From positions 29,264,001 through 29,328,000 of the forward strand of contig NC_135655.1 in NCBI RefSeq assembly GCF_964188315.1: a stretch of DNA of 64,000 nucleotides, in the 5' to 3' direction. The DNA comes from Podarcis muralis (taxonomy: Eukaryota). A program made the translations under genes and the position numbers. Each line of letters opens with the position of its first letter. Position 1 is the stretch's first letter. A model generated the notes under the pieces. The model did not search any database. It was given only the letters and a program-made list of their open reading frames with translations, and had not been told where the DNA came from. Positions 11,405 to 17,237 of this stretch are shown in pieces.

Positions 11405-11757
11405 CTCTCCACATATGAACCAACACAGACCCTGAAATCATCATCTGAGACCCTTCATCATGTACTTGACAGGTCCAGAGGGTGGCAACATGAGAACTGG
11501 CCTTTTCTGTGGTGGCTCCCAATTTGCGGAATGCTCTCCACAGGGAGGCTTGCCTGGCACCTTCATTGCATCTATTTAGGCACCAGGTGAAAACATTCCT
11601 CTCCTCCCAGGCATCAGCTAATTAAACAACCTATGGCCTTTTAAACTGGTGGGGGCACTATTGTTTTTGTTTATTATGTATTTTTGTGCTTCTATATTGT
11701 AAACCACCCTGTGACCCTTGGATGAAGACCTTTAATAAATAAATAAATAAATAAAAA
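11405..11757 (+). mobile_element. L2 LINE 3' fragment
   Basis: ggccttttctgtggtggctcc...ggaatgctctcc matches the L2 ORF end (AFSVVAP.LWNAL). (AAAT)n tail. Confidence 0.6.
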
Positions 11758-13270: not shown

Positions 13271-13487
13271 TAATATTATGCCAGCATTTTTTCATCTTCA
13301 TTGGCTCCTGCAATGTTTCTTGTCCAATTCAAGGTGCTGATTCCGACCTTTAAAGATTTTTTTACAACTTGGGAACATGGCGAATCTACCTGAACCCTGA
13401 GATCACCAACAGAAGATTCTCACAAGCTGAGATAAAATGGGTGGCCACAAGACAAAAGGCTTTTTTTACAAGTGACCCCCATTTATG

Positions 13488-13901
13488 TGTGGCAATAGAT
13501 ATATTGGGACCCCAGCTAATTGATTTATTGGTCCTCAATTAGCTTTTATGGCAGCCCGGTCCGGCGCGCTTCCCTCAGCTGCGCCACTCAGCTCCCTTCG
13601 TCCGGTAGCTCCAGTCACACCTTAGCAGAGATAAACACAGCGGTGATAAACTGTCACGTCCTTCACTTAGCTTCCAGACAAACACACACAGAGTCCAGGT
13701 TTGTCCATTTCAGCTCTTTATTCCGACATTCCCCCAGGGATCTCCTGGGCTCCTTTCCGCCATTACAGGCTACGTCTTTCTCCCTCAACGACCAGAGGGG
13801 AACAGACAGACTCCTCCCAAACTCCTCCCAGCTTCTAAAAGCTGACGTCAGAATTGAGGCATCATGGGAACTTCTTAACCAGTTAAGTTCCAAACCTGAC
13901 A
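13488..13901 (-). repeat. 3' LTR of the Copia element
   Basis: Direct repeat of 16335-16748 (offset 2847) with no difference seen by eye. Contains a CRE palindrome TGACGTCA at 13843-13850. Confidence 0.95.
13546..13593 (-). other. tRNA(iMet) 5'-half-like sequence inside the 3' LTR
   Basis: AGCTGAGTGGCGCAGC-tgag-GGAAGCGCGCCGGACC-gggctgc-CATAA versus vertebrate tRNA-iMet AGCAGAGTGGCGCAGC-GGAAGCGTGCTGGGCC-CATAA (tRNA sequence recalled). Blocks match 15/16, 13/16 and 5/5. Confidence 0.8.
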
Positions 13902-13910
13902 CCCCCTCTA
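13902..13910 (-). other. Polypurine tract
   Basis: Minus strand reads TAGAGGGGG immediately before TGTCAGG, the start of the 3' LTR. Confidence 0.85.
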
Positions 13911-14336
13911 TGCCGAAACCATTCTGACAAGACCCTCTGAGTTCAACACCTTGCCCTTTGCCTTGTGCCACTTCCCGGCATCTTTCCCAGGCACCTGTTG
14001 AACCCCTTCAACACTCCCAGAATCACACTGTGCGACACTTTTCCACGCACTTGTGACCTGATACCCTACTGACCCTTTAGGGCCAGCAGTTGTGTCTTCT
14101 CCGTCAGACTTTTCCCCCTCTGACTTGACAACCCTTCCGTGAGCTTTCTCCATTACCGGAGATGAAGCCTCACACCTGGACACTCCTTTCACAACCCTTG
14201 GAGATGCCCAAACCTGCCCTGAACCCTGATCCTGGACTTGGTCCCCATCACCGGGTTTTGAACCCTGATTCTGGACCTGATCCCCCGTCACCGGATTCAG
14301 CAACAGCCTCCCTTCTCCCTTGAGAAGACTTTGCAC
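13908..14336 (-). pseudogene. IN-RT linker, first residues of RT, and RNase H C-terminal tail; RT/RH core deleted
   Basis: SPRVVKGV (linker-like) and SVEGVQQVPGKDAGKWHKA (Copia RT-start-like) are followed within about 60 bp by the PPT. No YxDD motif. Confidence 0.6.
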
Positions 14337-14760
14337 CCGTCACCTGGTGACGTATTCCCTTTTCCTTGAAAAACTCCTCCAGAGCAGACCCAGTAAACTG
14401 TGACCCTCGGTCGCTCTTGAACCCTTGCACCTTGGTGGAAAACCTTAGTTCCACCTCCGCAACCCAATCCTTGATCAGTTGCGCCGCCTCCTCCTGTGAT
14501 TTGAGAGAGAGACACCAGCCAACCTGGCTGTGGCCATCTGTCAGCGATGGCACATACCTGGCCCCACCCAGACTCTCACACCTCATGGGTTCTGACAGAT
14601 CTGTGTGAACAAGCTCAAAGGGCTTCTTTGGCTACCCTCCCAAACCCGGGAAAACCATGTACCTTTGCACCTTTGCATGCCCTGCACCCTAGGGACCTCC
14701 CGCATTTCCGGAGTTAGTACCCTTTTGTGCACCTGTGCAACTTTTGCACATGAGTGGGAA
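14337..14760 (-). pseudogene. Copia integrase remnant (Zn-finger part plus truncated catalytic core)
   Basis: CRACKGAK...(frameshift)...KPFELVHTDLSEPMRCESLGGARY...VQGFKSDRGSQFTGSALEEFFKEKGIRHQVT. Similarity stops before the catalytic Glu. Confidence 0.9.
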
Positions 14761-14779
14761 CCTTAGCACACTGCACCTG

Positions 14780-15114
14780 TGCTTTTACCAGCATTCCCAC
14801 CACCCTCCAGAGGTGTCTCCAGAACAAAGAAATTATTCTTGCTCTTCGCCATGTTGATCCGTTGTCGCCCCCCTCTGAAAATGGAACAGGTGTCATTTTC
14901 AAAGCACATTTTTGAACCCCTGCTTCGTTAGAGCAGATACAGATAACCGACAACAATTCAGTCCCGGCACAACGTAGACCTCTTGCTCCTCCTGTAAAGG
15001 AGAGAAAAACACGTTAGCCAATTGTTCCTGTTGAAACAGCCCTGCAATTCCGCAGTTTGCCTATCAGGTGCTGCCTGATAGTAGAATCCAAAACACCCAG
15101 CGTGTCACCGTGTC
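14780..15114 (-). pseudogene. Copia protease region remnant
   Basis: RWV/(frameshift)LDST at about 15080-15100 is a degenerate W.LDSG motif. VYVVPGLNCCRLSVSALTKQGF resembles Copia VLYVP.L..NLLSVS.L...G. Contains stops and frameshifts. Confidence 0.7.
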
Positions 15115-15117
15115 CTA

Positions 15118-16068
15118 GCTGGAGTTGTTCTTTACAGTTGCCATAGAAGCAACAAACGTCCCGCTGCCTCTGTCCTTGGCAGCGTCCGAAACCGCAACAT
15201 CCTGCGTTGCTCTGAAGACTGGACTTATCTCAGAGTTCCCAGACAACTCTGCAGCACGTATCTCCCTCTGCAGCAGATGGCTGGCCTTGAAGCCTGTAGC
15301 TGTGTCCTGTTTCCCAGGCTTCAACTTTCGACGCAAATATCTCTTGGCAGCCTTTGGAAAAAGAGGCTTTTCTGTGCTTTTACTGCTCACCGCCCCCCCA
15401 CTGCTCCCAGGGCTCCCGGGACGCTTTCCTGCACCCCCAGTGGTAGGTAAAGGGCTCCCAGCAGCTTGCCTCTCTCCAAGCTCCTCACGCAGATGTTGAA
15501 CTCCAGTGGAAAAATCACTGCCTTGGGCTCCTCCCGCTGGCCTCCTTCTCCTTCTTCCGGAAAAGCACTCCTTGCCAGCTCCGCCCATTCTGAACCTCCA
15601 CTTCATTCCAGCACGTACAGTGGAAAACTTTTTAAACGTGCCTTTGGAAAAAGTCCGCCCCCCCCCCCACCTGCTCAGCAGCACTCCTTGTGGCTAAAGC
15701 ATCAGGGACAGGGGCCCCAGCCGTCTCTAGGCTTTTGTATTCTTTCTCCAGGGCTCTGGCCTTTTGCTGAAGCTTCACAGCACACTCCCAGACAGCCCTT
15801 TTAGATAGTCCCCCCTCTGGGGCCCACAGCCCTTCCCAGCTGTGCACCGGCTCTCACGAAGGTGGTCAGCGCCATCTTGCCTTCTGTTCTGAAGCAGCCA
15901 TCTCCCGGCCCTTGCTGTCTGCCTCCAGCCTCACAAACTCCCTGGAGCACTAGGCAAACGGCCTCTGGCTTCCTGGCACCCAGAACAGTAGACTTCAGAT
16001 CAGCAGCCAGGTTGCCCAACTTCTTAAAGTGAGCATGGAACGTCCTCCAAGACCTGGCAGCCTGCCAT
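15118..16068 (-). pseudogene. Copia gag remnant
   Basis: GGLSKRAVWECAVKLQQKARALE...AGAPVPD resembles Copia gag. Degenerate zinc knuckle near 15270-15310. Multiple stops and frameshifts. The start ATG at 16068 is inferred. Confidence 0.55.
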
Positions 16069-16325
16069 CCTCTTCCGTTCTCCCAAGGGGCCCCAAGCTT
16101 ACTCACAGCCTATCCAGCACCCGTCCGGAGAAACGATTTTCCAGCTGCTCTTCAGCTCTCCGCAACACAGGCAACCACTTTGTGTCTTTCAGTCAGCCGC
16201 TTTTAGCTCCGCAGCTACTCCTTGCCTCTTAACACCAGGCAAAAAAAAAAACCACCATCTCCTGCCGATCTTCAAACGCATTCCGGCAGCTTCTTCAGTG
16301 ACAGTTTTACAAGCGGTGATTAGTA

Positions 16326-16334
16326 CCCATAACC
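16326..16334 (-). other. Primer binding site, half-tRNA(iMet) type
   Basis: GGTTATGGG directly after the 5' LTR, complementary to CCCAUAACC of the tRNA-iMet anticodon stem-loop, as in Drosophila copia. Confidence 0.85.
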
Positions 16335-16748
16335 TGTGGCAATAGATATATTGGGACCCCAGCTAATTGATTTATTGGTCCTCAATTAGCTTTTATGGCA
16401 GCCCGGTCCGGCGCGCTTCCCTCAGCTGCGCCACTCAGCTCCCTTCGTCCGGTAGCTCCAGTCACACCTTAGCAGAGATAAACACAGCGGTGATAAACTG
16501 TCACGTCCTTCACTTAGCTTCCAGACAAACACACACAGAGTCCAGGTTTGTCCATTTCAGCTCTTTATTCCGACATTCCCCCAGGGATCTCCTGGGCTCC
16601 TTTCCGCCATTACAGGCTACGTCTTTCTCCCTCAACGACCAGAGGGGAACAGACAGACTCCTCCCAAACTCCTCCCAGCTTCTAAAAGCTGACGTCAGAA
16701 TTGAGGCATCATGGGAACTTCTTAACCAGTTAAGTTCCAAACCTGACA
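16335..16748 (-). repeat. 5' LTR of the Copia element
   Basis: Direct repeat of 13488-13901. Its tRNA-like segment is at 16393-16440. Confidence 0.95.
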
Positions 16749-17237
16749 TTATGGAATGCTCCCTCCAGACTGGTTTGCCTGGCACCCCCTTTTAATGTCT
16801 TTTCAGTACCTGAGAAGAGTTTCTTCAGTTTCACTGATCTTTTAAGCCCCACTTTTAAAATCTCCGGCATTATCAGGGGGGAGAGACGAGTCCCACCATG
16901 TACAGGAAAACTATCTTACTTTTTATAAAGTTTGGGTATTCGTGCTTTCTAATTTTTATATTTTGGGTTCCATGGAACTCCCTGCCACAATAATTCAGTT
17001 CCTCAAGGTGACCCTTTTCCACAGTTGCTCGTTCCTTTTAAAATCCTCCTCATAGGCTTAAGCATGAGGTGGACACCAGCACTGGATATAGTATGACCTG
17101 TTGAGAATATTGTTTATTAAAGGGTTTTGTGTATTTAAGGCAACACTGATATTTAAACTGGTGTCTTGCATGCACTTTATGGCAGTTTCTACAGACTGAG
17201 AGACAATGTTGCTGACACCAGCCTCTAAACAGCTTTT

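Follow-up and report, generated by a model that had tools for sequence, protein, structure and literature searches.

Half-tRNA-iMet priming is known from several Ty1/copia elements, including Drosophila copia, yeast Ty5 and the plant elements Osser, Bryco and Gymco-II (PMC10886601, PMC6317226). Their PBS, which abuts the LTR, is the complement of the anticodon-loop region in this tRNA (GGTTATGG...). The same arrangement is found in WIN, a lizard-type Copia element located in a 64,000-nucleotide stretch of DNA (the window), and in a clade of its relatives; the 5-bp target duplication is also common to both groups, as is the Copia coding type, which is seen with its domain order in relatives of WIN. 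The WIN clade differs from the other half-iMet Copia elements in two respects. Firstly, its PBS is 8-9 nt long, while that of 20 outgroups is 11-15 nt long. Secondly, its U5 contains a sense copy of part of the presumed primer and an antisense box; the sampled outgroups have no sense copy.

How half-tRNA-primed elements select, hold and later remove their primer is poorly understood, as is plus-strand transfer with a very short PBS. The WIN clade is a natural three-part module (short PBS, antisense U5 box and sense primer copy) with testable predictions.

Extended antisense contacts between primer and template include the U5 contacts of RSV, the Ty1 boxes and the bipartite PBS of Ty3. The HIV-1 primer activation signal resembles the WIN-clade box CCGCTG..CTCTGC(T): both are located upstream in U5 and are antisense to primer sequence not bound by the PBS (PMC11181671). 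In HIV-1, RSV, Ty1 and Ty3, all contacts are antisense to the primer, and none is known to include a long same-sense copy like that of the WIN clade. HIV-1 also imitates its own primer tRNA near the PBS by means of a tRNA-like element (PMC5113203, PMC5689005). This is a structural mimic of the anticodon arm which binds LysRS, whereas the WIN clade carries a sequence-level copy of nt 1-33 in which the anticodon loop is the least conserved part.

Small-RNA gene sequences are found inside the LTRs of Cassandra (5S), Ajax (5S) and Helenus (tRNA), as in WIN (PMC10886601). However, these are tiny non-coding elements with a complete Pol III promoter, and the tRNA of Helenus is unrelated to its PBS. 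The piece in the WIN clade comprises the 5' half only and has no B box; it is located in the U5 of Pol II-type LTRs, in coding elements, and corresponds to their own presumed primer. WIN contains no tRNA with A and B boxes and is 3261 bp long, compared with less than ~1 kb for Helenus and other Pol III-driven TRIMs. The self-priming elements Tf1 and sushi likewise have sequence of primer polarity in their own 5' RNA (PMC6317226). In contrast to these, the WIN-clade piece lies away from the RNA 5' end and its PBS-pairing part is not conserved. Tf1-type elements conserve complementarity between their own 5' RNA and the PBS; in WIN this amounts to 6 nt, and it is lost in the relatives.

A preliminary description of the window stated that no LTR piece was known to be the element's own primer. 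This agrees with the Helenus paper (PMC10886601), and no description of a sense primer copy in a Copia LTR was found by full-text literature searches. The same-sense primer copy in a Copia LTR appears to be new; already known are extended antisense contacts with the primer, mimicry of a tRNA by HIV-1 and LTR pieces derived from small RNAs. An LTR can thus long retain a copy of the element's own primer, unlike the Pol III promoters of Cassandra and Helenus and the structural mimicry of HIV-1.

Anatomy of the element and its U5

WIN is an internally degraded Copia element of 3261 bp (13488..16748), with an identical LTR pair and a 5-bp target duplication, TTATG (13483-13487 and 16749-16753). All of its features given here are on the minus strand. 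In element sense, the 5' LTR (16335..16748) and the 3' LTR (13488..13901) are each 414 bp long, bounded by TG..CA and 100% identical. The 9-nt PBS, GGTTATGGG, directly follows the end of the 5' LTR (16326..16334) and is complementary to tRNA-iMet nt 31-39. The polypurine tract AGAGGGGG precedes the 3' LTR (13902..13909). WIN therefore has the structural hallmarks of a Ty1/copia element (TG..CA LTRs, 5-bp duplication, PBS and polypurine tract). An AATAAA polyA signal is located at LTR 180-185 (16564..16569, also 13717-13722).

The 2.4-kb interior is degraded; its sole recognisable coding remnant is an integrase-core fragment (14248..14586), which is also its only Pfam match (rve, E 2e-9). In the relatives L007 and L002, the domains follow the order gag, rve, then RVT_2, of which WIN keeps the rve fragment only. 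Ten ORFs of the window were looked up exactly in a protein collection and none was found. WIN is coding-dead, yet its LTRs are identical and its target duplication is intact; it must have been mobilised recently by the proteins of another element. There is no further copy of it within the window. In a DNA run, word depth reaches thousands across WIN, as against ~9 across its flank; the family is therefore abundant. Element-sense RNA of the family was also detected.

Two smaller features concern the surroundings of the element and its leader. The sequence just past the insertion site (16753-16802) resembles that at 11528-11577, 5 kb away (72% over 50 nt); WIN was probably inserted within another repeat. 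Some 85 nt beyond the PBS, at 16240-16250, the leader contains a run of 11 T in element sense.

The tRNA-iMet-like segment is located at LTR 309-356, at 16393..16440 in the U5 of the 5' LTR and at 13546..13593 in the 3' LTR; the copy in the 5' LTR is the one carried by genomic RNA upstream of the PBS. The reverse complement of both intervals reads AGCTGAGTGGCGCAGC-TGAG-GGAAGCGCGCCGGACC-GGGCTGC-CATAA, exactly as first described. Local alignment of the LTR with tRNA-iMet (reference sequence from PMC8216282) scores 36, with 28/32 matches over nt 1-32 and a single insertion of 4 nt, in the D loop. Addition of CATAA after a 7-nt insertion gives 33/37, which reproduces the earlier count of 33 matches over nt 1-37 with two insertions.

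This score was reached by none of 5000 dinucleotide shuffles searched on both strands (mean 15.6, maximum 29, Gumbel p ~3e-6), and the top score in the rest of the window was 23 (291 tiles). Control scores on the LTR were at background: 19 for elongator tRNA-Met, 12 for tRNA-Lys and 14 for the antisense strand. On the strength of these alignments, the stretch is a genuine, tRNA-iMet-derived, same-sense copy of the 5' half of the primer, from nt 1 to ~33-37. Both the shuffles and the relatives described below exclude a coincidental match to a GC-rich LTR. The central claim of the preliminary description stands and is strengthened by these relatives: the PBS matches the anticodon region of a tRNA whose 5' half is present in the LTR as a sense copy.

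Two single-cell 3'-end RNA runs show an increase in element-sense depth from ~3 to ~30 at 13672-13687 (LTR ~215-230). The R/U5 border is therefore placed near LTR 222-228, ~40 nt past AATAAA; given this polyA edge, the antisense boxes and the sense copy (309-356) lie in U5. In WIN the copy is 58 nt ahead of the PBS, within the 5' leader of genomic RNA, and its complement is part of minus-strand strong-stop DNA.

The antisense box consists of two parts upstream of the copy. Box A, CCGCTGTG, is located at LTR 259-266 (16483..16490, also 13636-13643) and is antisense to tRNA-iMet nt 18-11 with one mismatch. Box B, CTCTGCTA, is located at LTR 272-279 (16470..16477, also 13623-13630) and is antisense to nt 7-1. 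This feature is absent from the preliminary description. In all seven U5s compared (see below), CCGCTG(Y)G, followed by (A)CTCTGC(T), precedes the copy; these are antisense to tRNA nt 18-11 and nt 8-1, respectively. Box B is a perfect 7-8-mer in six of the seven and 6 nt long in L004. It was also considered as a sense copy of the 3' acceptor end of the tRNA. The antisense reading is the more likely because CTCTGC is mostly preceded by A, the partner of U8, and not by C, and because box A continues the antisense register.

The predicted duplex of the WIN box with tRNA nt 1-18 has an energy of -28 kcal/mol, which is reached by none of 500 shuffles. Across the clade, tRNA nt 1-18 pairs at the box with -25 to -29 kcal/mol in 6/7 U5s (0-3 of 500 shuffles match). 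In 7/7 U5s the real tRNA is a stronger partner of the box than the copy in the same element: -25 to -29 kcal/mol against -12 to -25, and -17 against -14 in L005. The first eight positions of the copy contain substitutions in 5/7 elements; these substitutions are never compensated in box B, which is still complementary to the tRNA. A box restricted to the D arm was not significant on its own, in the U5s of either the clade or the outgroups. The complementarity of U5 to the primer outside the PBS is thus conserved, as is characteristic of contacts resembling a primer activation signal, and by analogy with HIV-1 we read the box as an additional primer-contact site.

Between the copy and the PBS, U5 contains a hairpin with a 10-bp perfect stem, AGCTAATTGA/TCAATTAGCT, and AATAAA in its loop (16361..16391, also 13514-13544). 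Hairpins are present in the same position in L002 (TTGGGTCA..TGACCCAA) and in the L008 3' LTR (GTGGAAT|ATTCCAC), and are absent from L004, L005 and L007, in which the spacer is short. A further U5 sequence, GTGACAGTTT (LTR 245-254, 16495-16504), is perfectly complementary to the leader sequence AAACTGTCAC (16298-16307), 27 nt past the PBS; in the minimum-free-energy fold of WIN, the resulting U5-leader stem encloses the boxes, the copy and the PBS. In RNA cofolds of the primer with U5-PBS, pairing occurs at mixed sites and the 8-9-bp PBS helix is mostly missing from the minimum-free-energy structure; no weight is placed on these cofolds. A leader box downstream of the PBS and complementary to primer nt 9-31 was significant in no element.

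Relatives, outgroups and origin of the copy

Relatives were found by a profile-free search with the integrase fragment and by follow-up look-ups, which yielded five elements having upstream sequence. L004 and L007 are from Podarcis lilfordi, L002 and L008 are from one ENA assembly, and L005 is from a Logan run. Together with WIN, and with both LTRs of L008, these provide the seven U5s compared. L003 and L006 were left out as their upstream sequence is too short. L001 (P0002) was rejected as a relative; it is a distant Copia element without the GGTTATGGG-type PBS. A gag search matched only the query itself (Podarcis lilfordi).

The proteins of the relatives share 42-56% identity with the WIN fragment or with one another, and BLAST of their LTRs against the WIN LTR gave no alignment. 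All five have a PBS of 8-9 nt (GGTTATGG plus one variable base), and in 5/5 a sense tRNA-iMet-like stretch lies 20-110 nt ahead of it. The sense score was 36 in both WIN and L005, 33 in the L008 3' LTR, 32 in L004 and 29 in L002, each reached by 0/2000 shuffles; it was 21 in L007 and in the L008 5' LTR (p 0.005-0.012). Control tRNAs scored 21 or less on the seven U5s.

Over nt 1-32 the copies have an identity of 0.79-0.89 to tRNA-iMet, with nt 17-32 the best-kept section; over nt 33-39 it drops to 0.63. The near-perfect parts differ from lineage to lineage; L005, for example, contains an exact 18-mer of tRNA-iMet nt 7-24. Pairwise identity among six U5s is 0.66 in the copy and 0.69 in the upstream box, while the other segments are at the shuffled baseline (0.45-0.57). 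Between them, the copy and the PBS tile the primer, with nt 1 to ~33 covered by the former and nt 31/32-39 by the latter. An ETS-type GGAA site was considered as a conserved core and dropped, as GGAA is absent from L002 and from the L008 5' LTR.

Some variation within families and contigs was also observed. In organism A, the loose ends of reads at window 16390-16392 indicate at least two sister LTR subfamilies, one with a shorter copy (..GGAAGTGTGCCGGGCGGCCATAAA..) and another in which the anticodon part is altered (..CCGGACCCAGCTGCGGTAGTAAAT); within-family read variation in this organism is so sparse that selection cannot be read from it. The last 26 nt of the L007 U5 recur downstream, within the end of a called ORF (L007:7072-7097); it seems that most of the 3' LTR is missing or that the gene call extends into it. 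The LTRs of L008 (6-231 and 4713-4940) are 77% identical, and the 3' copy is far more tRNA-like than the 5' copy (33 vs 21). This contig may be a chimera of two subfamilies.

For outgroups, metagenome contigs were scanned and gave 80 distant Copia loci. Among these are 18 distinct loci whose half-iMet PBS, usually GGTTATGGGCCCAG, matches exactly over 11-15 nt. In the 250 nt ahead of the PBS of these 18 loci there is no sense copy (scores 8-19). In L089/L090 and L091, the two nearest outgroups at 31-33% identity, the PBS measures 11 and 14 nt, respectively, and a sense copy is likewise missing. In total, none of the 20 outgroup Copia elements sampled with an 11-15-nt half-iMet PBS carries the copy. 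In outgroups (L009-L091), the half-iMet PBS tends to be 12-15 nt long and to stop immediately before G26 of the tRNA. In L045 and L069 the PBS continues to 23-26 nt, with mismatches exactly at tRNA nt 24-25; this extension looks like read-through of a modified base.

A maximum-likelihood tree, from which the short WIN and L004 fragments were omitted, groups together the four copy-bearing elements whose proteins are long (SH-aLRT 100, branch 0.78). Their terminal branches are 0.36-0.52 substitutions per protein site. Since the copy-bearing elements form one clade and the outgroups have no copy, the copy, the box and the shortened PBS arose together, once, and were long retained. Judged from this tree, the copy arose once and is kept through deep divergence. 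The relatives also have derived indels in common (an extra base after GTG, and GGGCGCC), which point to a single ancient capture. The association of short PBS and copy is consequently one evolutionary event and not a statistical correlation.

Possible roles of the copy

The arrangement probably helps the handling of the primer. Three explanations were suggested in the preliminary description. The first of these, in which minus-strand DNA folds back on its attached primer, is the best fit to the U5 location of the copy, its tiling with the PBS and the spread of conservation over nt 1-32; it is favoured here, tentatively, in a more specific form. The DNA complement of the copy would fold back on the attached primer, and RNase H would then trim the primer to its short PBS part.

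Beyond the anatomy, we infer every step of this model. The half-tRNA primer would be held on genomic RNA by the short PBS and the antisense box of U5. When RT copies U5, the minus-strand strong-stop DNA would come to include the complement of the copy, at a distance of 20-110 nt from the junction of RNA and DNA. After degradation of the template, nt 1-33 of the primer could fold back onto this complement, and in the resulting RNA:DNA hybrid the 5' part of the primer would be a substrate for RNase H. Of the primer, only the 8-9 nt matching the PBS would be left as template for plus-strand strong-stop DNA. This would make the second strand transfer workable with a PBS that falls short of the copyable part of the primer (~14 nt in relatives); with a 9-nt PBS and an untrimmed primer, plus-strand strong-stop DNA would have a non-matching 3' tail, which trimming would avoid.

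Folds of the primer with U5 cDNA, run with RNA and with DNA parameters, agree that, in 6/6 elements, 27-32 of the first 33 primer nucleotides pair with the complement of the copy; this prediction follows by construction from the sequence similarity. The lineage-specific distribution of near-perfect parts fits selection on overall hybrid strength and not on a single motif. In addition, the copy is found only where the PBS is 8-9 nt long, below the ~14 nt typical of relatives. G26 of tRNA is commonly a modified base, and the lengths observed suggest that the PBS in this superfamily normally equals the copyable part of the primer, ending just before G26. It is assumed that the modified bases would allow RT to read at least 14 nt into the half primer in lizards. 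With slightly less assurance still, the sense copy can be proposed to be a built-in guide for primer disposal, replacing the modified-base stop of other elements; if this is true, it represents a previously unknown step of LTR-retroelement reverse transcription. In a variant of this proposal, the half primer may be created in part through pairing between the RNA copy and the 3' half of an intact tRNA-iMet. A point against the fold-back model is that Ty1-type elements, with a 10-nt PBS, manage although no such copy is known in them.

A rather unlikely alternative is that the copy acts as a mask at the RNA level. The copy and the antisense box (tRNA nt 18-1) would form a U5 hairpin that hides the primer-contact site until the tRNA half displaces it. 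Box and copy do constitute an inverted repeat, which is paired in the minimum-free-energy fold of WIN; the box is a significant partner of tRNA nt 1-18 in 6/7 U5s, and masking of the HIV-1 primer activation signal in the PBS-segment provides a precedent (review PMC11181671). However, the preference of the box for the real tRNA over the copy in 7/7 elements and the uncompensated substitutions at copy nt 1-8 (5/7 elements) are not expected of a mask. Furthermore, nt 1-18 would suffice for masking, yet nt 17-32 are the best conserved, and the 261-nt U5-PBS region does not fold with significantly greater stability than shuffles (z -1.7).

Somewhat less likely again is a tRNA mimic, in which the RNA copy binds a factor that recognises tRNA-iMet or pairs with the 3' half of an incoming full-length tRNA. 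Pairing with the 3' strands of the acceptor and anticodon stems would open the tRNA and free its 5' half for the PBS and box. Conservation extends over all of nt 1-32, including G18 and G19 of the D loop. This agrees with mimicry, for which the LysRS-binding tRNA-like element of HIV-1 is a precedent (PMC5113203, PMC5689005). Insertions in the copy are mostly at loops and hinges of the cloverleaf (the D loop, position 26, and the anticodon loop, after nt 31), and this could reflect a role in RNA structure or protein binding instead of fold-back. The stems themselves are not consistently preserved: a D stem is impossible in L004 and weak in L002, changes in the anticodon-stem strand (CCGGA, CTGGA) would break the 5-bp helix with the 3' strand of the tRNA, and the acceptor strand is changed in 5/7 elements. 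The anticodon loop is not conserved, and the Rfam tRNA model does not recognise the piece.

The copy may, improbably, be a passenger relic without function. A packaged primer fragment would have been copied into U5 by template switching during minus-strand synthesis and would since have decayed slowly. The similarity begins exactly at tRNA nt 1 and stops near the primer cleavage site, as expected if the whole processed half served as template, and the shared derived indels indicate one capture. A relic does not fit the retention of 79-89% identity to the tRNA despite terminal branches of 0.36-0.52, while other parts of U5 are at the random baseline.

Tf1-like self-priming, the second of the earlier suggestions, is very improbable. 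Here CCATAA of the copy would pair with the PBS and the element's own RNA would serve as primer. CCATAA of WIN is complementary to 6 nt of the PBS, but this pairing part is kept only in the WIN family: it has been lost in L004, L005, L007 and L008, and identity over nt 33-39 is 0.63 even with generous alignment. The copy is also internal to U5, away from the RNA 5' end.

The nt 8-19 region of tRNA corresponds to the A box of tRNA genes. The copy includes this region, but the third suggestion, that it donates a Pol III promoter, can be set aside almost entirely, together with a chance match in a GC-rich LTR: the T arm is absent, as is the B box (which had not been evident in the preliminary description either), neither ARAGORN nor Rfam (E up to 10) calls a tRNA in the element, and the LTR instead has Pol II signals, namely a CRE-like TGACGTCA, AATAAA and the mapped polyA edge, with the piece located downstream of the Pol II polyA signal.
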